Below, piece after piece: positions 3,121 to 62,565 of a stretch of 64,000 nucleotides of DNA (the first letter of the stretch is position 1; every line of letters starts with the position of its first letter). A model generated the notes under the pieces. The model was not told where the DNA came from and ran no database searches. It saw nothing but the letters and a program-made list of their open reading frames with translations. Made by a program: the position numbers and the translations under genes. The stretch is from the NCBI GenBank assembly GCA_965649825.1, contig OZ287698.1, forward strand, positions 62,001 through 126,000. Reading direction: 5' to 3'. Source of the stretch: Penicillus capitatus (Eukaryota; Plantae; Chlorophyta).

Positions 3121-4518
3121 ATGAACACGGTATGTTCTTTCGGTTTCGCTCCCCGATCACATGCGCTGTCGCTCGGCGCAAGGACAGCGAAACGTTTCTC
3201 CTTGAACGGCAGTAGTGGACGCAGCAGGTCGTCGTCCTTGGTCGTTTCGGCGAAGAAGAAGAAGAAAGAGAGCATGGAAGCTGTAGAGAATGTGCTAAGA
3301 CGGACAGAAGAGATCCAGAAGCAGATGACCATGCTCAAATCGGAACTGATCGAGACTCAGGAGGCTGAACAGAAAAGGATGAAGGAGAACAGCGAGGTGA
3401 TGAATGCCGTGGCCGTTTTGCATTCGCTTGACGGGGCATTGACGATGTTGCTGGATCGACAAGAACGGTTCTTCAAAGAAGAGAGAGACTACTGGTTGGC
3501 TGAGAGAGGAGAATGGCAAAAACGCGAGTCTGAACTCAGAAGAGAGATTGCCCAGCTGAACGCGAAACTCTCGAGTCAAGCCCAGTCGCATTCTACAAAG
3601 CCGACGTCTTCATCCGAAGAGAAGATGAACTCGGTGAATACAGCCAAGGAAGCGGTGGAGGCGGTAGGCGATGTAGCCGAGAAGGTGAAGGCTTCTATTG
3701 GGTTGGCATTCGCAGCTGTCAATGCTGGAGATGTGTTGTCTGAAGACTATGAGAAACTGCTCCGTCCACCCTCCAACGGAAAAACTCTCCATGCGAATAG
3801 TCCTTCGACCGACAAGGAGGCAGATATTCCCGTAGAGACGGTCAAGAGTCCTCCCACGGGACCCCCACCGACCTTGGCGGTCGGAGATGATGATATCTAC
3901 TGGGTCAGCCAGTTGCAAGCAGCTCTCGGGAAGAAGGGATATTACTGTGGAGATGATGATGCGGAGGATTTCTATTTCGGCGAAGGGACCGTTTCTGCAT
4001 TGCTCACGTTTCAAGCATGCACGGGGCTCAAAGAAACAGGCACGACAGATGCAGTGACGTGGAAGGCATTGTTAGGTGAAGATATGAAACCCGTCGTCGG
4101 AGATGTCCATCCAGACAACACAGCATCGACAACGACCGATCAGAAGAATACCACTCCAACGGGAAATGATGAGGAACCGAAGGAATTTCCAGTTTTATCT
4201 GAGTTTGACGGTGGTAAAGAAGTGCACTGCTTTCAAGTCATGCTCGAGGTTGCTGGTTTTTCATGCGGAAAGGACGACATGATGTGGTGGCATTACGGCG
4301 ATGATACCATTGCTGCTATCAAGACATTTCAGGCATGTAACGGATTGCCACAGAGCGGTGTGGCAGACGCGCTTACATGGGAGAAGCTTGCTGGTGAAGG
4401 AAAGACGATGGACGATGTCTGCCGAGTCGTCGAGAAGGAACAGATCTACGAAGAAGACCTGACTAAATCTGATCGCGTGTGGTTGATGGGAGAACAAAGA
4501 TGGGAACGCAAACTGTGA
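3121..4518 (+). CDS. pTAC5-like plastid protein: transit peptide, coiled coil and two peptidoglycan-binding-like (PG_binding_1) domains; intronless
   Basis: Two repeats of (YW)VxxLQxxL..GF.CG.DD.....YG..T..A...FQACxGLxxTG..D..TW; C-terminal RVWLMGEQRWE resembles the pTAC5 RVFLLGENRWE motif. Confidence 0.8.
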   Translation: MNTVCSFGFAPRSHALSLGARTAKRFSLNGSSGRSRSSSLVVSAKKKKKESMEAVENVLRRTEEIQKQMTMLKSELIETQEAEQKRMKENSEVMNAVAVLHSLDGALTMLLDRQERFFKEERDYWLAERGEWQKRESELRREIAQLNAKLSSQAQSHSTKPTSSSEEKMNSVNTAKEAVEAVGDVAEKVKASIGLAFAAVNAGDVLSEDYEKLLRPPSNGKTLHANSPSTDKEADIPVETVKSPPTGPPPTLAVGDDDIYWVSQLQAALGKKGYYCGDDDAEDFYFGEGTVSALLTFQACTGLKETGTTDAVTWKALLGEDMKPVVGDVHPDNTASTTTDQKNTTPTGNDEEPKEFPVLSEFDGGKEVHCFQVMLEVAGFSCGKDDMMWWHYGDDTIAAIKTFQACNGLPQSGVADALTWEKLAGEGKTMDDVCRVVEKEQIYEEDLTKSDRVWLMGEQRWERKL

Positions 4519-6700: not shown

Positions 6701-9700
6701 CTACGTTGCTCGTAATAACACACCCACATCATAGTCTCTGGCAATCTGCCTCCATCCTGATTGTACTGCCTCGGCACGAAGAATGAGTCTTCGGTACAGT
6801 TTTGCTGAGTGTAGACGTTTTCCGATGCCTTTCTGTGAAACAGTGATCGTCACTTTTTCTGTGGCGCCCACAGCCAAGAGGAATGTGCGAGGCATGACAT
6901 CCAGCCATCCAGGCACATGTCGATTGGCGTTTTCTGCCTCTTCCGTAAACAATGCCACCTTTACCACTTTGTCGCTTCGATTCTGGACGTCCACGGACTG
7001 CTGTCCATCTCCAATGAACTCAAGGAATTTCGGATGCAGCTGGAGAGCAACTTTGGGCAGTGTGTCACTCATATCCTTGCGCAGAATATTGAACGACAGG
7101 TCTCGCATTTTCTCTTGAATGAATGCAGGAAAGTGGACATTCAGCAAACACCATACGGGTTTGTGATCTGAATCCGCCACCTCCATACAGGCGTTATAGA
7201 CTTCACAAGAGACAATGATATCATCTGGATCGTGGGCAGATGTATTGGGCGCCGCCGCACGGTCAAGAAAATTGACATGCTGAGGACTGTCTAATGGCAT
7301 GAGTGGTGTCTGTTCATCGCAGCTGGGAAAGTGTTCGTCCTCATCTTCAAGATCGAGAAATGGCTTTGAACCGCGGAAGAAAATGCGATCGGTCCAGGCA
7401 GGAACACGTTTCTTTTCACTGGAATCGTACCCTCCTCCAGGTCCTTTGTCAAACTTGTATGTCGGATTGAATTGAATGCGACCTTCCCTCAAGCCAACAA
7501 ATACCTTTTTCTCTTTCATTTGTGCTCGACACTGATCCAGACGAAGCAGCAGGGCAGCTTTGTCCTCTTTGATACGACCAATGGCATCTTCATAGTTCGT
7601 CTGAAGACGGTAATTGAAATCTCCCATCCAGACCAAGAGCTCTGCTTGCTGCAATCCACTGCTCACTTCCGTTTCGCCTGTCTCTTGCTCGAGGGATTTG
7701 AAGGAATCGAATCGGTCGTCATCTGTAAAGCTGTACTTTGGAGTGGGAGCCGCCATCCTTTGAGGCTGCACCATTAATGTACTGAACATATCTTTCTCTT
7801 TGGCAAAAGACAGCCCTTGGTTAATGCTGCGATAGTCATTGTTTCTCTTGGCAATGTTTTCTTTGTGTGCGGCAAAGTGTGCGGCAACGACAGTGACACG
7901 CCGCCGATAGAGTGAGAATGTAATGGCCACTCCGCCTTTGTTGCTTCCCACGCCCATGACTCCTGTTCCCACATGGGCAGTGCCCACATTGCCAACATAT
8001 TTCATCAGTTTTTGTCGGGCAAACACGTAAATAATGATCCCTGACATCTGCCGAAGGGCCACCCGCTTCCATCTTCGCTCAAAGATGCTGTTGGTTTCAC
8101 GGAGAGCGTGCTCGAATTCATCTGCCCACCAATTTGCCGTCGCTGAGCCCTTATCTGAATTAGACTTTGCATATTTGCCGATGGCCATTGTCCTTGCCAC
8201 ACTGCCCGTGCCTTCAACCTCCTGTAGACCCAGGACCACAATATCACATTCCTTTAGCTGACCATGACTGCACAGCCACGTGCGCAAAGACGATTCTGGT
8301 GGACGAGCTTGATTGACATTCCACGTGCCACACAGGATTTTGAATTTGTGAGGTACAGTCACATCTTTGATGCATGACATGAATTTCTGCCACGAGAGTG
8401 AATCCAGAGCTGGATGTGGAATGCCACGAGACCAACCTTCAAGCACAAACAAACACAGGGAGAGATGGATATCTTTGTTGTAACAGCAGTACCCTTGATC
8501 GATCCATCGGCAGCCAGAGAATAGACCAATGGTCCGAGTATGGTCATATCTATCACTGTTGTTTCGTGCGCTGACCAGTACTTCAGCTTGTTGAAGACCT
8601 GGTCGAAGACGACAATGCACCCATCATTAAGACCAACCCACATGCGATCATCAACGACACAGAGACACGACAAGCCACAAGAAAACACACATCGATCCTT
8701 TAATTGGCCATTCCATGAAAAACGTTCCAGATGTCCTTGCTTGTAGCCAACCCAAATCGTCCGATCCAACATTGGCGCCAATGCTTGTATTGGACTGAGT
8801 GTGATTTCTTCATCCGGAGCATGAGGCATCACAAACGTTGTCTGCAGCAGCGGCAGCACAGCCAAAGAATTAGCAAGAGGGCGATGGGGATGATGATGAT
8901 GATGTCCATACCTTTCCAGTGAACTGTTTTCCTATCCTCTTTCGGCCTTTGCCCAGAATTCGAGCCATCCTTCCAACCGCCACTTTTAACCCAGCTGTAC
9001 CAGCATCCATTTCAGAGTCCTCGTGCTCCATCGGTGTACGAATGCCAAATCGCTGAGCGCTGGCAATACGTCCATCTGCGTCCAGATCAAGTCCCCGAGT
9101 CGGATTGATGCGTTGCTGACGATCGGGAAAGGGTGGTGTGCCAAGAAACTCAATGGAGGCTCTATCCGTCTCAATACGGCCTAAGAACGATCCACTGTAT
9201 GCCTCCCAGATAGAAATATTGTTCTGTCCAGCAGTCCACACGACACTGCCACATGATGCGACAACAATGGCCTTGACGCCGCCGTGTGGTTTATCACCCC
9301 CAGGGCGTTTCAGTGGCATGCTTGTCGGCAGCTTGCCAACAGACACCTCGTGCCAGATGCGGACGGATCCACGTGAGCTGCCTGTCCACAGATCGCCCCA
9401 CATCGTCATGGCGATGGCATCAATAGAGCCATGCTTATGTGCTTTCCACTGATAAGCGCATTTAGTCAAGGGAATGGGTTCCTTTCCAACATAATGCATT
9501 TCGACAAACGAATCGTCAAAACCTAAAAGCAGAAGAGATGTGACGGATGCTGTCCATCCACTGCGAAGGCCGTGCCAAGAAAGAGATATCCTGATTGTTC
9601 ATGGACCAACATTGATGTGACTTTTCCATTAGCTTGATAGTGACTTGGAGGAATCTCAGAACAGATGGCACTGTCCACGTCTTCACTGTCAAGTCTACCT

Positions 9701-11447: not shown

Positions 11448-13374
11448 CTACACATCATCGATCCGCCGCCGAGCAGCTCTGTCCACGTTCCTCGTCACAC
11501 GAGCAGTTTCGACGACCGAAGCTGGCAGCAGACGAACGAGCTGTGGCCAGCAATACAGTAGTCTCTTCGTCACAAGCGTCACGCATTGTGCATCCGCGCC
11601 ATCAGAGATCATGGTATTGAAGATCTTCACTGCTTTCTCCCACTCTCCCGTCTTCTCAATGGCGTTGATGAGTCCCAGATAGATGTAGTGGTTTGCTCGA
11701 ATGCCTTCGCTCTGCATCTGTTCGTACAGCGCCAAGGCCTCCTTCAGTTGTCCGTTACGCCCACAGGCAGAGATAATGGAGGAGTAGGTCACGACGTCGG
11801 GCTGCAGCTGGTGATGTGACAGAGACTTGAATATATGTAGAGCGGCTTCCCAATCGCCTCCTCTTCCGAGGCAGGTAATCAGAGCATTGTAGCAGATGAG
11901 ATTGGGCTTCACTCCAGCCAACTGCAGTTCTCTGAATATCTCTAATCCCAGTTTGTGTTTCTGCCCCTTTTGACAGGCGACGATAAGAGATGACAGCGTC
12001 ACGGAATCGAGTCTCATGTTTTTCTTTTGCATAGCTCTGAGCAGATCTACTGCTTCATCTACTCTGCCTTGCTTGGCACAGACGGCGATCATTGTGTTGA
12101 ATGTGTAATGGTTTGGCTGAATGGTGGAGTCCTCTCTTTGACTGATCTTCAGCATCATATCAAAGATCTCCACAGCACGATCGTATTGTCTGCATCGGTT
12201 GCAGGCACTGATTATCGTGTTGTACGTAACGCTGCACGGTTGGATGCCATTTTTCAGCATGCTCTGGAAGACGGACCATGCCTGAATCCATGCATGCCCA
12301 TTTGCACAGGCAGCAATTAATGTATTGTATGCTTGACGATCTGCCTGGATGCCATCCGACTCCATTTTTTCAAAGATATGGAAGGCCTCTCTCCATTTAC
12401 CCTGCTTCTGCAGTGCACCCATCACAGTTGTATAGGACACACAGTTTGGCTTCACGCCAGACTGCTCCATCATCTTAAACGTATCCATGACTGCTTTCAA
12501 GTCTCCCACGGCAGCACCGACATTGATCAGTGCTGTGTATGTCACCACATCAGGCAACAGCGAATTCGAACAGAGCTCATCAAATAGCTTGATAGCGCGT
12601 GGGAGATCTTTGGCTTTGACACACGCACTGATGGCAGAGTTGTAGGCAATGTTGTCCAGTCCACCAGTGTTGTGTTTCATTTCTTCAAAGAGTTGCATGA
12701 CATGTCTTGTATCAGATCCGTTGCGGGAAAACACATTGATCAGACTGGTGTACAGGCGTTTGTCCCTTGTCAACGATGGTTTTTTCTTCTGTAAGTAACG
12801 AAATGTTTCCAGGGCTCGGTATCTCTTTCCACGTCGATCCAGGATATCGATCAATTCGAGTAGATCCAGAAAGGAGAGCTGCATTCGGCATAGGGTCCTG
12901 TCCAATGATGCTGTGGAAGGAAGGTCCACGATTTCATCTGCCCATATACTGAGCGGCGATCGTGTTTGATCAGCGATGTCTTCCTGGTCATGTGGTTGAT
13001 AGAATTGCTCCGTGGAGACTTGCAGGGACGTCGAAATGGCTGAAGAGAAAGCGGGCTGCAAAAAACAGATCCCTTGAGCAGAAGACAGCCAGTATGTGGC
13101 AATGATGTGTACCTGCGTGACAGTTTCGCGGCAGGGCGTCTTCGGTGAAGGCACATCTTTGAGTGCTTTGTTCTGGACCTGAACGAGAAGGGACTCATGG
13201 AGAAGACAAGACGAACGAGAAGCGTGTTTCGTTGCGCACTTTGTCTGGTTTGCGGTTCTTCGCTGTTCTTGAGACGACGGATCGAGACGACGCTATCGTC
13301 GAAAGCGCCGTCTTTATCCACCATCTCAATGCGGACCCCGTCGAACCCGAGATGACAGGACGTGAGATCTGCAT
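11448..13374 (-). CDS. Pentatricopeptide repeat (P-class PPR) protein, probably organelle-targeted
   Basis: About 10 tandem 35-aa repeats (YNSAISAC, YTALINVG, YTTVMGAL, YNTLIAAC, YNALITCL, YSSIISAC); short 5' exons inferred. Confidence 0.93.
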
Positions 13375-28786: not shown

Positions 28787-29849
28787 ATGACTCCTCACGC
28801 TTCTCTCCTGTCCCTGCGTGCGCGCGGTCTCGTGCGGAGATCCGAGCGACGTCGCTTAATATGCCGAAACTCCATGGGTGTGCACTTGGACCCGCCGGAA
28901 TACGACGCGTCGAAGTCTAAGATTCGTCTGGATCCACCAAAGCACGCCTATGGCCTCTCCGTTGGTCAGATGGCGGCACTAGGTCTGACAGGAGACCAAG
29001 TGCAGAAACGATTTCAAGTCGAAGCAGTAAACACAACCTCGCTCGCATAACAGAATTCCTGACAGAGGTTTCTCATAGGATGCTCTGACAGCAAAAGCAC
29101 ATCTGGGAGGAGAAAGTCTGAGCGAGCACACCCGAATCGCCACGCGCATGGCCGTAGGTCGTCCCTCCAAGAAATCTCCGCCAGATCTCCCCTCACTCAT
29201 TTTGGATGGACGCATCGTCTACATCGGTCTGCCACTGGTTCCCAACGTCACAGAACTTGTGGTCTCTGAGCTCCTCTGGCTGAACTATGATCAGGCAGAT
29301 CAGCCCGTCTATATCTACATCAATTCAACTGGATCTCAGACGCCCGATGGACAAGTTGTCGGGTTTGAAACAGAGACGTTTGCCATTCTGGACACTATGG
29401 CTTACATTCGCCCCACAAAATACACCATTGCTTTGGCACAGGCCCATGGAAATGCAGCTCTGATTTTGGCCTCGGGCAAGAGGGGTCAGCGTTTTTGTAT
29501 GCCCCATACGCATATCAAGCTCCAGGCACCGATCATGAATCAGTCGTACGATGTCTCGACCAATGCAACGATCAAAGCAAACGAGCTGCAGTCGTGCACC
29601 GACACATACATCGAAATGTTAAGTGAGTTCACTGGACGGGATCCGGAGACAGTGAGAAAGGAGAGTGCCAGAGATAAGTATTACACGCCCGAAGCTGCCA
29701 TTGAATACGGTCTGATCGACAAGGTCATCAAAACCCAAGACACCGTGATGTTGGAGAGGGACTACGATCAGATGTTGGCCGAAAACCAGATAGCGCAAAG
29801 CCGTGCAGCAGGACGTGGTGGTGACGAGCCCTCCACAGGTTCTGAGTAA
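28787..29849 (+). CDS. clpR: Plastid Clp protease non-catalytic subunit (ClpR1-like)
   Basis: PPDLPSLILDGRIVYIGLPLVPNVTELVVSELLWLNYD, YIYINSTGSQ, VGFETE; catalytic Ser position replaced (AHGNAAL). Confidence 0.9.
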
Positions 29850-31367: not shown

Positions 31368-32340
31368 ATGACGTTTCGTTTGCATCCACCTCGTTTGCAA
31401 CACCACCCCTGCATCTGTCGATTGTCTTATCGTCGCAGGAGAGTCGTTATGGAAGCGCAGACTCCGCGGAAGCAACGTGAAAGGAGAGTCGAGTTCTGTA
31501 ATGGCCGAGGGGAAAAACTCGTCGGGACGCTAGTTGAGGCACCGACGGCGAAAACCGTTGTTCTGTGCCATGGATACAGTGATAACAGAGACACAGCGAT
31601 ACTCCAAGCACTTGCCGAACGGATCGATGAGATCCCGCTGTCTTCTTTTCGCTTTGATTTTTCTGGAAATGGAGAGAGTGAAGGGACATTTGAATATGGG
31701 AACTACTGGGAAGAAGTGGAAGACATTCGCAGCGCTGTCAAATACTTAAGAACTGAGAACCGGGAGATTTATGCACTGATCGGTCAGTCGCCACAGTTTT
31801 TTGACACTCGAGATGGTGATGACGTGGCATCTTACAGGACACAGCAAGGCAGGAGGTGATGTGTTGCTCTATGCGTCTCGGTACGACGATGTTCCTGTAA
31901 TTATCAACATCAGCGGAAGATTTCATATGAAGAAAGGGATTGAGGAGAGATTCGGATCAGATATTTTTGATCGACTGGAACGTGAAGGTCAGGTGGAGGT
32001 GCCCCGAAAACTTCCTAATCGTGAAATGAGTTCCTTCATGCTTACTAAGAAAGTGAGATTACGAAGAGTTCGTTAAAATGTGCGAGTAACGAGAATGTGT
32101 CAGTCAATGGATAGTCGTTTGAATTTGGACATGGGAAGTGCCGTGAAGAAGATAACGAAGAGCCGTGTCCTGACGGTTCATGGAAAAGCGGACGTCACCA
32201 TTTCCGTGGAAGATGCTAAAGATTTTGCATCATGTATTGCGCAACATGAGTTGGCGGTAATCGACGAAGCGGATCATAACTTTACGCAACAGAAGCATCT
32301 CCAGGCTCTTGTGGAAAAGAGCATTGCATTCCTTCTCTGA
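31368..32340 (+). CDS. Alpha/beta hydrolase (esterase/thioesterase-like, Hydrolase_4)
   Basis: VVLCHGY, FRFDFSGNGESEG, spliced nucleophile elbow IG|HSKAGG, VLTVHGKAD, EADHNF. Confidence 0.92.
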
Positions 32341-34249: not shown

Positions 34250-36739
34250 CTACGTGTCACATTTTTTGTTGAGAATTTCGAAAATCTCTTGTTGCCATTC
34301 GAGTTTCAAACGATTGCTGTCATCAATGCGCTGCAAAACATCCGGATGATCTTTTTGAAACGTGAAAAGAACATCAGATAGATAGGAGCTAATCTCATTT
34401 TTCGACATCTTCTTTGCCTGTTCCGTTCGCAACGCCAACAGGGTTACCGCCTTAAGCAAAATCCACGTGTTTAAGAAAGAAAGACAAGAAAGGAGTCACC
34501 TGATGAGACAAAGGAAAGAGAATCGTGCTCTTTTGGACGAGCGCTTGTTTCATGACTTCGATTCTCAAGTTCCAACTTTCAGAAACCGCATTCTCCGCCG
34601 ACGATCCAAACTGAAAAGCTGCCATCCGTCATCGTTTACCAAATCACTGCTACATAAATAGAATCATGGTTACCGTCGGCTGCTTGTGCCAATTCCAAAC
34701 GAATGGTGGGCGCCAAGTCTTCCAAAGCCGGAGGATATGCACGGGCTCCAATCCGAGAAACACTCTGCAATGGGTCCACAGACACACCGTCCTCTTCAAT
34801 CTCCTTAATCACGATCTAATGCAGGAGACGAATTCATTCAAAATAGTGTTTCCTGGAGAAAAAGAATATCAACCTGACCATCCGAAATCGACATGAATTC
34901 CTCGACAATAAAAGTCGGCAAAGAACTTGTATCTGAACTGCTGACTTCATCAGATGAGTCTCTTGGACGCAGTTTCTCTTTGAGCTTCGTTTTGAGTGTT
35001 TCCGACAACTTTGGATCTTTTTCGATAGCGTCGAGTTTGGTCTGGACTTCCTGGTAATGCTGTTGCTGTCCAGAAGCTGCCGAACCATTGACGACGGGGA
35101 CAAGCGTCATGGAACCGGCCCCCATAGATAGGGAAGCCTTGGAAGCCCGTTGAAGAACAGAGGAAAAGAACCTGCAAAAAGGACAGCGACAAAACACATT
35201 CCATTCTCAGTGCAATCAGTGTCAATGCCACACACCTTCGTCGCTCTGCTGTTTCAGAGGCCATGAGTGTCCCATCGATATCCACTAGATTCTCTTTCCC
35301 CTCTCCTTTCTCATTCCTGTCACATTATCCACGAATCTGACCAGCTCACAAATGCACGGAGCGAATGGTGTGTACGATGTCCGTCGAACATCGGCAACGA
35401 GTTCTTGCATCAGGTTCCAGACATCGATCAGTGGTTGGAGGCTGTCGACGATGACCAAGGCGTCTCCTCCTCCTTCATTCCGAATGCTTTCTGCAAGACA
35501 CTGATGATGTTCTCGAATGAAATTCCTGAGAGATACATGCCGCCAAATGCAAGTGCTGCACACAGGGAAGCGAATTGTTCTCCGAGCGATTCCTCGTCCG
35601 ATGCCGCCACAAAGACTGTCTCTTTTACACCTTCCAACTCTCGAAACCGTGACAGAATGGCATTCTGTTCCTCATTCGACTTTCCAACGCAGGCATAGAC
35701 GCGAGACACAGAGGTCGATGTCTGAGCAGCGAGCATGTGTTCGGCCAATCTGGACAGCTCCTGACGGTTCTCTGAGATCAACAAAATGCATTGTCCTCGA
35801 CCAATGGGCGTCAAGATGTCGATTCCCTAAACAAAAAGAACAAACACACCTTCGTTGAGACGCAGAACGCAACATTGTTCTCAGACCCTCCAACCTTGTG
35901 CTGCATCGAGAGAGGCTGAAAAATGCGTTGCCGATCTGAAATATCTAACTGCTTGTTGAGCAGTGGTATCGATTTCTCTCGTGGCTCGATGTGAACAAGC
36001 GTAGATAGAACATTTCCCAGAACCTCTCCCTTCATCCTGTGCTGCTCCGTGGCAATTTTTAAGAATTCGTAGCTCCGCCATCCATCTCTCTCTTCTGTCT
36101 GATACAAGCAGACGGGTGTGAGCGATCACAGACTGCAGTGGCAGTGACCTCGAAGATCTCGCCGCATAGACAACGGACGGTATCATCTGGAGCAGGAAAG
36201 TTGACATCTGCCACCAATGCGAAGCAAACATCTGTTGTGTGTCGCCACAAAAGAATGCTAGAAGACGTTTCTCTGGATATACTGCCGACACATTAGAGTC
36301 CTACCCGCGTTGTCCGTTCTGGAATGCAAGTTCTGTTCCCATTGGGGCCTCGGTCGAAATACCCTCAATCATGGCAATACCTTCTCGGACACCCAACACC
36401 TGTTCCACTGAAAAAGAATAGATGATTCCGAAGCTGCAAAGACGAACAGACTTTCCCAGAATCGAGAAAGGCCTCTTCCGCCGCTTCGCCCTTCTCTGTC
36501 ACAGCAGACCCATCCATGTCGTTCTCAACCTCCAGTCCATCTCGAGAGGCATTGTCGGAGCCAAAGATAGAGATTGGCAATTTCTCATGAAATGCATCGG
36601 AAGAAGAGGACGCTGCAGTACACAAAGATCCCAAACGCGTCTTTCTGGCGGGTGTCTTCGAGAGGAGAACATTTTGCGATCTCCGAGACGATCGTTCTGA
36701 GAACGGTGGAAAGAGGAAGCGTCGAGTAAGGAGGGCCAT
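34250..36739 (-). CDS. Nuclear-encoded, degenerate F1-ATP synthase alpha-subunit-like protein with organellar transit peptide
   Basis: DILTPIGRGQCILLI, VYACVGK, LVIVDSL, SSVLQRASK..GAGSMTLVPVV, FMSISDGQV, DPLQSVSRIG and RLELAQ are colinear with AtpA; the Walker A is lost. Confidence 0.85.
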
Positions 36740-37786: not shown

Positions 37787-40753
37787 ATGGTTGGTTTGTG
37801 TGTGCGTTGTGGAAACAGGATCCAGCTGTTTGGTCGTTGTGGTTCTGCGTCATTCGCTCTGCCATTTCGTTATCGCGTTTCGGGACGAGAGGCGGCGACG
37901 AAAGTGTCATTGCAGCAACAGAAGCGAGAATACATTGAGAAACACGAAAAAGTGCGAAGAAAGAAAGAAAACAAAGACGCGCCGGTGATTCCGGTTCAGG
38001 ACATCGCTATTTCTTGTGGTATGTTGTGCCTTGCCGAGGGAGTGTGAGTCATAGAAGTGTAACTTGTGTGACCACCAGGTTCTGGCTTTGAGTCGTGCCT
38101 TGCTGTCTTTAGTATCAGGGAATCTCCTGCAACGTTGATATCACTCGTGCTATCATTCATTGTCCTCACACCGCCAGCGCCACCGAAAGGCGATCTTCAC
38201 GAGAAGCCCAGTTCGGAAAACAAAGAGGACATGGAGGCTGTTCTGCATAGCAGTGCTGCAAACGCAACAGATCCAAAAACAAAAGACTTCAATCACACTT
38301 GCAAGGAAAACTCAATGGGTCGATCTGCTGCCTCTGTGTCTGCATGGTGATGCGACGTGCGAGTGCTCACTGTAGGGAAAGTGAATGTCAATAGGGGAAA
38401 GAAGCCGAAGAAGAAGACCAAGAAAGTGATCAAGAACGGTCCAGGGGGTGGCGGCGGCAGTTACGACCGGATAGGTTCCATTCCACACAGTCACGACTAT
38501 ACAGCTGTCCCGTCGAATCGAATGCCATCGAATCGTGCGGTTTCCGAGAGTCTACCCGAGCAGAGTCATCAAATGAATGTTGTCGACAAGATCTTGCAGA
38601 GCATTACTATGAGAGGCGTGTCAGGCTCTGCGACCACTGCTGTAGATGTCTTCGAGAAGCAATCCGTGGATTCCCCACGTCTGCCAGATGGAGAGACATC
38701 TCGCGACTTGTCGAGCCCAGAGCATGGCGGACATCTGTCTCCCACGAGGACGGAGTCTGAAAGTGGGGGCCCACCGGATCGAGACACTCGGAGAACGGGA
38801 GATGATATGAAGAAGCAGAAGGATCTGACTTTTGCTTTCAATGACTTTGAAGTGGAAGACGTCTACATTCGACGCAATAGATCTGTGGGCTCTTTAGTGC
38901 GATCGGGCTCTGGCGTACTGCCTGCCTCATCTGGTGCGGATGCAATGGCGGCAACACCTTCTGCTGCTCCGCCATCGATGCAGACAACAGAGCACTTGAC
39001 GCCAAACAAGCCAGCTGAAAAGCAGGGATGGAGGTGTGCACCCCGTATACCGTCTTCCCCAGCCACATCCCCGCATCGACTCAATTTTCGATCAGCTAGT
39101 GGACTCTTGCAATCGAATGGAGATGGCAGGAACGCGGTCGAAGACACAAGTGCTGTCATGCCACCAACCAATGGACAGACACGTTTCGCAAGCGCCATCT
39201 ATCCAAGTGCAACTGCAGGTGATCTGGTGGAGCATCACCCGCCAGGCAGTGATATTGAGCAAGGGCATCAACAACGTGCTGCATTCCAAGCTTTGTTGCA
39301 AATGGGACCAACGCATCAGCCAATGACAAATCTGACGCATCAAATGGCTGCACATGCTGTCCATCAGACAAACATGGGCAGTCTACAGATGCCTGTGGTG
39401 GGCCATCCACCACCAGCTATGCCCCATCTCTTTGCTATGACACCACCTCAACAGGTGCTACAAGGGCACCATCTCGCTCTTGGCAGTGTTCCAAGTCTGG
39501 CGTCGCTATATGGGTTACATTTGGGAGCTCTGTTGTCGCAAGATGCTCAATTGAGAGGCGTCGCACCAGATCCGATGCGCAGAGAGGAATTCAGAAAGCA
39601 TAAAGATGATATCCATGAGAATACCGCATGCTTCTATATGAAACCGACAAATGACTTGGATAGATTTCTAACAGAGGTCACCCCTATGCTGCAACTGGAT
39701 CCGACCCTCGAACCACAGAAGGCTCTCGATCAACTCGCACTGGTGCGTCCGTTCCATGCATCCGTCCCTAAGAGTGACGGACGATATCACACTTTTGTGC
39801 TGCAGGAAGATGTGTGGAAGTTCTACTATGATTGTAGTATGCTAGGAAAAGAGATTCCATTGCATGGCAGCGCCGCTGGAAAAGAGAATCACTGTGGACC
39901 CTGTACAGCACACTATCTCCCTTATCTGTCTGGGATCCAGATCTTCACTCCCGAAGATATTCCACACGTCAGGGACAATATCTTCTTGTGTGACGTGGAT
40001 GGTTGGCCATCCTTCATGCGCATGCAATACGAACAAGTCATCCACAGCATCTCTGTTTGTGTCCCCTGGCTGACAATGTGGTTTCCAGTTTGAAGTGAAT
40101 CCGCCTTGGTTCCGTCTGCCACTCTATGACATGATGGATGAACTGTCGACACACGTTCCGGAACTGAAAGAGCTCAAGCTCAAAGATCTGCATCCAGCAT
40201 CGTGGTTCTGTGTTGCCTGGTAAGAGACAACTGTTGACAGGATGCCTGCATATGGATGCCTCTTCTGTTTTGTTAGGTACCCTCTATACAGAATACCTGA
40301 TGCGCCGCTGGGAACGCGTTTTCTCACATTTCACAATTTTCATCCGATGCTGCATTCGGCCACTGCAGTCGGGCAGGGTGGAAAGGTTCCTTTGGCAGTC
40401 TATGGACTGGAATGGTATAACATGCTGGATGAGCTGTGGTTAGACAACATTAAAGTAGCCAAGACGATTCGATCACCCTCACCCTCTAAACCTAATGACA
40501 ATGGACGATATGAAGGTGGTCACTCTTTTCCTCTCACACATCGTGCATCCATGAGCTGTCGAGTGTCATAGGTGTGAGTGGGGCCGAAGTATATTCCCCA
40601 GAACAGCAGCACTGGATGTTGCGTATTAAGGAGCTGCGTCAAACAGCCAAGACCTTTGCACGTGGGCTGACTTTCAGGCGATCGACGCCACATGGAATTG
40701 CAGATGCAAATACACATCATCATGATTTCGAATATTTCTATGAAAGAAACTGA
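37787..40753 (+). CDS. DUF789 family protein with long low-complexity N-terminus
   Basis: NDLDRFLTEVTP, DVWKFY, YLPYLSGIQIF, DLHPASWFCVAW|YPLYRIP, FLTFH, C-terminal HHDFEYF. Start uncertain. Confidence 0.88.
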
Positions 40754-61900: not shown

Positions 61901-62565
61901 GAAGCTCGATAAGCGTGCTACAGACATGCGTGGCTTTCAATATGTTAATGGCTACAGAAGACCAGCATCACTCGTGAGTGGCATCCGAACACTAAGAACT
62001 CGTCCTAGTGTGGAAAACAGACATTAGTAGACGTGTCGATCCAGTACACAGATAACGAGCGCCTAGCCCACGTCATATGCGTCCATGACAAAACAGCTCA
62101 AGACGAATGAACTCGGACGTCGGCAATCTTTTCAAATCGAGTTCATGAGATGAAATTGAAAATCTCCGTGCTGACGTGCGCGATTCAAGATAAGTTCGTA
62201 TGCCGTGGAGTGAAGCGCACCAGACATAACACTTACATGATATTACGAGTCTCGGATAATCACACTTTTTTATGTGTGAAGTGTGAAGTTCTCACTCGAG
62301 TCTGACAAAGCATAACAAAAGACACAATATGCATGCATATATATGTGCACATTCCGAACGTATTGTTGTGTCGACAACGATAAAGAGCCTCTTACGCCAA
62401 CGTTTGAATAACATAGCGGTTCTTGAGTTGACGGTGCTCTTCTGGTGAAGAATGTTCCTTTTCCTGATGCATGATTCTCTCGGTGTTCTTACGGAACCTT
62501 CACTAAACGAAGCTCGACTGCGCGGTAAAGAGCCGCCAACGCACGTCAGCTTCGTGACAACTGTC

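Follow-up and report, generated by a model that had tools for sequence, protein, structure and literature searches.

Why would a green alga keep in its nucleus an ATP synthase alpha subunit whose nucleotide-binding loop has been destroyed? The question is raised by a minus-strand gene at positions 34250-36739 of a stretch of 64,000 nucleotides from Penicillus capitatus (Chlorophyta; positions 62,001 to 126,000 of contig OZ287698.1, GenBank assembly GCA_965649825.1), which we call the window and to which coordinates refer unless stated otherwise. We find that this gene is a new, divergent member of an already described family, xATPA, and not an undescribed class. A first-pass annotation of this DNA had recognized the likeness to alpha and knew of no functional description. 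In this it was mistaken, as the family was named by Penot-Raquin et al. on 9 July 2026, with 222 homologues (bioRxiv 10.64898/2026.07.08.737214, cited below as Penot-Raquin et al., 2026), the one of Chlamydomonas being ATP1B (Cre10.g419050), whose annotation reads mitochondrial alpha isoform. Taken as a whole, the explanation that we hold to be quite probable is that of a green-algal xATPA, a nucleus-encoded and organelle-targeted paralogue of F1 alpha that would act as a one-sided alpha.

In a three-frame translation of positions 36800-34200, alpha-subunit-like segments switch frame along the region, with GT...AG boundaries at every switch. The gene model runs from an ATG at 36739, preceded by in-frame stop codons, to a TAG ending at 34250, and has 11 exons and ten GT-AG introns of 35-68 nt (Table 1); the joined exons form an open frame of 1947 nt (648 codons and the stop). 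From end to end the product is colinear with F1 alpha, and it keeps the three-domain architecture, matching the Pfam families ATP-synt_ab (PF00006, E=1.9e-18) and ATP-synt_ab_C (PF00306, E=3e-7). Matches among solved structures were all F1 alpha chains (best E=1e-20), in two aligned blocks with a gap between them. Judged on the sequence, the similarity to the alpha subunit is far beyond chance. Membership of another RecA-fold family (V-type B, FliI), considered in the first-pass annotation as well, is ruled out, the best matches being all F-type alpha with FliI-type proteins far down the list.

Along the spliced product the landmarks TPIGRGQ, VYACVGK, LQRASK..GSMTLVPV, SISDGQ, SVSRIG and RLELAQ follow one another in the order expected for F1 alpha. 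The Walker A motif GDRQTGKT has become SENRQELS at 35775-35752, every consensus residue (G, GK, S/T) being gone from its proper position; all the canonical alphas in our alignment have GDRxxGKT, and the orthologue described below has SENSQELS. In place of the REAYPGD region of canonical alpha there is ETAERRRFFSSVLQR; in the alignment ETAERRR lies opposite the (A/F)YPGDVF part of that loop. Kept, on the other hand, are a Walker-B-like aspartate (ALVIVDSL), GRGQ, the serine of MSISDGQ and the arginine of SVSRIG, the last being the arginine-finger residue R516, invariant across the family alignment. From these changes the window protein would be nucleotide-free. About 95 residues precede the beta-barrel, and the first 47 of them (36739-36599) form a transit-peptide-like presequence with 9 R+K, 1 D+E and 14 S+T. 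Much of this had been seen in the first-pass annotation, whose span agrees to the letter with our start and stop, and whose landmarks, transit-peptide-like N-terminus and exchange of the RExYPGD loop for ETAERRR all stand. Its Walker A replacement is correct as well, with the position refined from about 35755-35785, and the hallmark of the family, an insertion of some 50 amino acids (see below), had escaped it.

Is this a living gene? The destruction of Walker A and REAYPGD, and a ratio of non-synonymous to synonymous substitutions (dN/dS) above the expectation for a canonical alpha, could point to a decaying pseudogene or to a functionless nuclear copy of organelle atpA, i.e., nuclear plastid or mitochondrial DNA (NUPT/NUMT). 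However, an intact orthologue is available on a 1.06-Mb contig of ENA assembly ERZ26696514 (L001). It lay hidden behind a database open reading frame (ORF), P0001, which is its unspliced read-through: in public metagenome data, genes are called in prokaryotic style, which ignores the introns and has yielded a chimeric product of 409 amino acids. When the two genomic loci are aligned, all 11 exons are found in L001, with 79-92% exon identity and 81% amino-acid identity. Within the exons, indels are limited to two of 3 nt and one of 1 nt at the stop codon, whereas intron length differs in eight of the ten introns, in six of them by a number that is not a multiple of 3. The overall dN/dS between the two loci is 0.26 (NG86) or 0.42 (YN00), and not about 1 as the first-pass annotation had foreseen for a pseudogene; the presequence reaches 0.63, as against 0.17-0.26 in the barrel, the nucleotide-binding-type and the C-terminal domains. 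Gene order is also common to the segment 29148-40093 of the window and to 2136-12773 of L001 (conserved neighbours in Table 1). Because the orthologue is intact, the exon indels are in frame, dN/dS is low and gene order is conserved, a pseudogene or a recent organelle insertion is excluded. The ten spliceosomal introns and the open frame of 648 codons speak against it too, as does the fact that the motif changes are common to the family across many algal lineages, and to our minds this alternative is scarcely credible. The gene is real, nuclear, intact and under purifying selection; the first-pass annotation had likewise called it nuclear, intron-rich, intact in frame and no recent arrival from an organelle.

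To which family does it belong? The initial protein search returned five GC-rich eukaryotic proteins with 26-32% identity to the window protein, all carrying ERRRF..LQR and EEFMSIxDGQ together with a long insertion, features absent from canonical alpha. One of the five adjoins MCM8 and a plant-type SufE-BolA gene in a compact genome. In the window protein the insertion, or bump, comprises residues 423-483 and precedes SISDGQ, adding ca. 50 amino acids, so that GSxT and DGQ are 83 residues apart, vs. 33 in canonical alpha. It contains the green-type bump motif (LSExxKxKL; LSETLKTKL) as LSETLKTKLKEKL, to be compared with LSEEMKAKLLQKL in Bryopsis and LSEEQKAKIKAVL in P0074, and its position is the same in the xATPAs of Bryopsis, Pedinophyceae and Cymbomonas. 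A profile built from the five database homologues was searched exhaustively against 1.8 billion representatives. Many insertion-bearing proteins were recovered as single full-length matches, while canonical alphas were split in three pieces at the insertion. In profile scores the gap is wide, 692-874 bits vs. at most 217 bits for canonical alphas; a renewed search of the word index, now with the family alignment, gave zero further named members. The best matches of the window protein itself are all insertion-bearing, the top one (P0075) reaching 247 bits, while canonical alphas reach 80 bits at best; in a comparison with the validated Bryopsis xATPA the full protein scores 243 bits (E=8e-76). 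Their clusters include Bryopsis sp. (P0075, GMH44862.1), Pedinophyceae sp. (P0072, CAG9462441.1), Cymbomonas (P0092, KAK3240525.1), Pyramimonas CCMP2087 (in the cluster of P0087) and the diatom Stephanopyxis (P0193). The first three of these accessions are all listed in Table S1 of the preprint as validated xATPA (Penot-Raquin et al., 2026).

We also built a neighbour-joining tree of 67 sequences (43 insertion-bearing, 20 canonical alphas and 4 oddities) from Kimura distances over 468 columns, with 100 bootstraps. The insertion-bearing proteins, the window protein included, form a clade apart from the canonical alphas (bootstrap 92) that holds the three published xATPA anchors. The window protein and its orthologue make up a long branch (bootstrap 100) in the green part of this clade, alongside the anchors. 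Peptides of the window protein were sought in the sequence tables of the preprint and none was found, i.e., the gene is not among the 222 listed xATPA.

Three other proteins adjoin the xATPA clade in the tree: P0165 (Mataza sp. D1, EukProt EP00462_P025988), P0118 and P0213, which are alpha-like and come from a heterotrophic cercozoan and other assemblies. Their xATPA-like traits are the absence of REAYPGD and the motifs xxRxxYSxxIQRSA and EMMSVSDGQ; their P-loop is intact, and they have no bump, with 28-30 amino acids where canonical alpha has 33. These could be bump-less relatives of xATPA or a long-branch artefact; as a sister group, the Mataza type could mark the ancestral state of the family.

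The xATPA family has been found in Chlorophyta, euglenophytes, dinoflagellates, haptophytes, chlorarachniophytes, cryptophytes, several ochrophyte groups and some labyrinthulomycetes, and was not found in cyanobacteria, red algae, glaucophytes or land plants (Penot-Raquin et al., 2026). Its hallmarks are an N-terminal targeting sequence, a bump of about 60 amino acids at a fixed position, an inconsistent P-loop and a conserved arginine finger, and the authors used a reciprocal best hit to the protein of the diatom Phaeodactylum tricornutum as their operational criterion (Penot-Raquin et al., 2026). The window protein resembles the P. tricornutum (Phatr3_J31465/B7FRE6) and Chlamydomonas (ATP1B) members in being a nucleus-encoded alpha-like protein of ca. 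70 kDa with a presequence, the bump at the identical position with LSExxKxKL, a P-loop that is not conserved and an arginine finger that is. It differs in lying on the longest green branch, in a Walker A remnant that is among the most degenerate, in lacking the N-terminal PDWDxEMxxFKxR motif of core-chlorophyte members, and in its ten introns, the diatom gene being monoexonic. With canonical F1/CF1 alpha (AtpA/ATP1) it shares the three domains and the motif order GRGQ, VYxxxG, GSxT, SIxDGQ, SVSRxG, LxLAQ. However, it has neither Walker A nor REAYPGD, carries 50 additional residues between GSxT and DGQ, is only 22-25% identical, and is encoded by a nuclear gene with introns, whereas the plastid atpA of green algae is plastid-encoded. 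A more distant parallel is found in other members of the rotary-ATPase alpha/beta fold without catalytic activity, such as the F1-like ATPases of mycoplasmas (PMC3369863), also paralogues of the F1 alpha/beta fold that serve outside the canonical ATP synthase; those are encoded in bacterial multi-subunit operons, while the window gene is a lone, eukaryotic nuclear gene that groups with F-type alpha.

What could such a protein do? In F1, each alpha contacts two betas; the catalytic interface uses the arginine finger, and the non-catalytic one forms around the alpha's own nucleotide. The window protein keeps the residues with which an alpha contributes to catalysis in the adjacent beta, namely the xxSIxDGQ serine and the SVSRxG arginine finger, and the bump loop adjoins its own nucleotide site. 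By homology to the P. tricornutum xATPA and from this textbook geometry, we infer that the window protein may work as a one-sided alpha. It would dock on the plastid beta (and gamma) via the preserved catalytic-interface face, while its dead, bump-occluded face would be unable to accept the next beta. Its effect would then be to cap, or to sequester, beta not yet assembled or alpha2-beta2-gamma intermediates still incomplete, with no part in rotary catalysis, and it would regulate how F1 subunits are made or turned over.

The diatom protein provides the experimental background for this proposal. It pulls down ATPB and ATPC in vitro, with a dissociation constant for ATPB of 12 nM vs. 2.3 nM for ATPA, i.e., ca. 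5-fold weaker, and an AlphaFold 3 model places 2 alpha, 2 beta and 1 xATPA on gamma with the bump blocking the third beta (Penot-Raquin et al., 2026). Growth of P. tricornutum knock-outs was impaired in one combination of conditions only, namely 6 °C with half salinity under constant light (Penot-Raquin et al., 2026). The suggestion of a decoy or regulator in the first-pass annotation agrees with what the preprint proposes; its other suggestion, a CF1 assembly chaperone, found no direct support, and the knock-out and physiology data of the preprint argue against a role in the function of the ATP synthase proper.

The nucleotide pocket itself has a peculiar distribution. GxxxxGK[ST] is intact in 26 of the 43 representatives of the clade and lost in the other 17, which are scattered over the tree. 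The 26 intact P-loops indicate that the ancestral xATPA probably bound nucleotide, and the Walker-B-like aspartate and GRGQ motif kept in the window protein would be compatible with a nucleotide or other phosphorylated ligand held in a non-canonical pocket, the protein being then a sensor or an enzyme and not a passive decoy. Against this stands the loss of all the Walker A consensus positions in both the window protein and its orthologue, and the scattered losses argue that binding is dispensable for the core role, so we consider ligand binding very improbable. For the family at large a further proposal can be made, although tentatively and with the odds rather against it: xATPA might be a one-sided alpha with the beta interface under selection and its own dispensable pocket capped by the bump, i.e., a factor dedicated to capping or sequestering unassembled plastid beta or alpha2-beta2-gamma intermediates. 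As part of the same tentative proposal, the pocket might have been lost repeatedly and independently in those 17 representatives, most thoroughly in the fast-evolving green lineage of the window.

Plastids are the most likely destination of the window protein, and here another reading has to be weighed, namely that of a divergent mitochondrial alpha isoform acting on or with the mitochondrial F1, as the annotation of Chlamydomonas ATP1B has it. The R/S-rich, acid-poor presequence would suit either organelle, targeting predictors put xATPAs in mitochondria or chloroplasts, and labyrinthulomycetes, which are non-photosynthetic, have xATPA (Penot-Raquin et al., 2026). However, the reported experimental localizations are plastidial (GFP fusion in P. 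tricornutum, plastid proteome in Euglena), the diel expression of ATP1B tracks that of the plastid ATP synthase genes (Penot-Raquin et al., 2026), and the family is largely restricted to algae. We regard a mitochondrial isoform as improbable.

Several observations do weigh against the explanation by a plastid one-sided alpha. The composition of the presequence, as said, is compatible with plastid or mitochondrion alike. No phenotype in photosynthesis or ATP synthase was seen in the diatom knock-outs, and a labyrinthulomycete xATPA failed to complement them (Penot-Raquin et al., 2026). Because of this lack of phenotype, the link to F1 biogenesis is offered as a hypothesis. Within the insertion-bearing clade the deeper nodes are weakly supported in the neighbour-joining tree. 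The window lineage is its most divergent green member, with 26-33% identity vs. 40-49% among the other green xATPAs, and with such divergence functional conservation is not guaranteed. Moreover, residues 90-380 of the window protein score 44 bits against the P. tricornutum xATPA (first ca. 400 amino acids of the latter only) vs. 45-51 bits against canonical alphas.

Members of the family occur widely among microalgae, and the one from the diatom, which binds CF1 beta and gamma, is required if the cells are to grow in polar-summer conditions. If a one-sided alpha of this kind exists, xATPA could be the missing trans-factor in control-by-epistasy (CES) regulation of CF1 subunit synthesis. With its P-loop erased and its arginine-finger face kept, the window gene sharpens the argument that the core role of the family needs no nucleotide binding, and it lends itself to comparison with homologues that have the P-loop (Bryopsis, Chlorella, Chlamydomonas ATP1B). 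As to annotation, genes of this type should be labelled neither "ATP synthase subunit alpha, mitochondrial" nor pseudogene.

Table 1. Exons and landmarks of the window xATPA gene, in order of transcription, followed by other genes of the window
Feature	Coordinates	Strand	Remarks
Exon 1	36452..36739	-	Start codon, presequence, acidic linker and beginning of the N-terminal beta-barrel domain; start (MALLARR...) identical in the orthologue L001
Exon 2	36305..36399	-	VLGVREGIAMIEGI...FQNGQRG; N-terminal barrel; 88% nt identity to L001, gap-free
Exon 3	36134..36257	-	3' end ambiguous: 36134 (GCA/GTCTGT) or 36149 (GAG/GTCACT)
Exon 4	35895..36098	-	TEERDGW...PLSMQHK; from the model and the alignment to the orthologue
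Exon 5	35537..35826	-	GIDILTPIGRGQ, degenerate Walker A SENRQELS, VYACVGK
TPIGRGQ	35808-35791	-	Landmark
Exon 6	35350..35486	-	Walker-B-like ALVIVDSL (35461-35438), variable loop; boundaries of intron 6 uncertain
Exon 7	35236..35284	-	(L)DIDGTLMASETAERR; beginning of family motif ERRRF, in place of REAYPGD
Exon 8	34874..35171	-	FFSSVLQRASK, GAGSMTLVPV, bump insertion, EEFMSISDGQ (34903-34874)
LQRASK..GSMTLVPV	35122-35093	-	Landmark
Bump insertion	35092-34910	-	Precedes SISDGQ
Green-type bump motif	35008-34970	-	
SISDGQ	34903-34874	-	Landmark
Exon 9	34674..34815	-	SVSRIG (34764-34747) with arginine-finger residue R516; RLELAQAAD
RLELAQ	34701-34675	-	Landmark
Exon 10	34500..34618	-	AFQFGSS...PLSHQ; beginning of the C-terminal helical domain
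Exon 11	34250..34450	-	Remaining C-terminal alpha/beta-type helical domain (PF00306) and stop codon
DUF789 gene	38357-40093	+	Conserved neighbour
Hydrolase_4-like (alpha/beta-hydrolase) ORF	31368-31859	+	Conserved neighbour
ClpP-like ORF	29148-29849	+	Conserved neighbour
PG_binding_1 protein	3121-4518	+	Two peptidoglycan-binding-like domains; single large ORF
Inositol polyphosphate 5-phosphatase	6701-8620	-	ORF
Long P-type multi-repeat PPR protein	11448-13154	-	Single large ORF

Two splice sites, the donor of intron 3 and the acceptor of intron 6, are ambiguous from the DNA alone; a handful of residues at most are concerned, and zero landmarks are affected. At the intron 3 donor the orthologue has GAG/GTCA alone, 15 nt upstream of the modelled donor, while the window has both possibilities. 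The acceptor of intron 6 is TAG in the window model and TGG in the orthologue; on these boundaries the two species must splice the variable loop at intron 6 slightly differently. Upstream of this acceptor (35284-35350 in the window, about 6856-6925 in L001) the two loci would read NLVDIDG and NLAEIDG, a coding-like change that resembles LVEYEG of the family, and the true start of exon 7 may possibly lie upstream of the modelled one, behind a very short intron. An alternative-frame ORF of 136 amino acids at 35881-36291 on the minus strand, which spans exons 3-4 plus the intervening intron, is an annotation artefact and not a gene.

A JmjC gene is also present in the window. For the inositol polyphosphate 5-phosphatase, the best named relatives are from core chlorophytes (Trebouxia, Dunaliella, Astrephomene, Elliptochloris; 33-36% identity), with land plants next, which points to a green-lineage host as the first-pass annotation had assumed, and there is a 97% identical match on a 1.16-Mb ENA contig and others of 54-71% in Logan assemblies.

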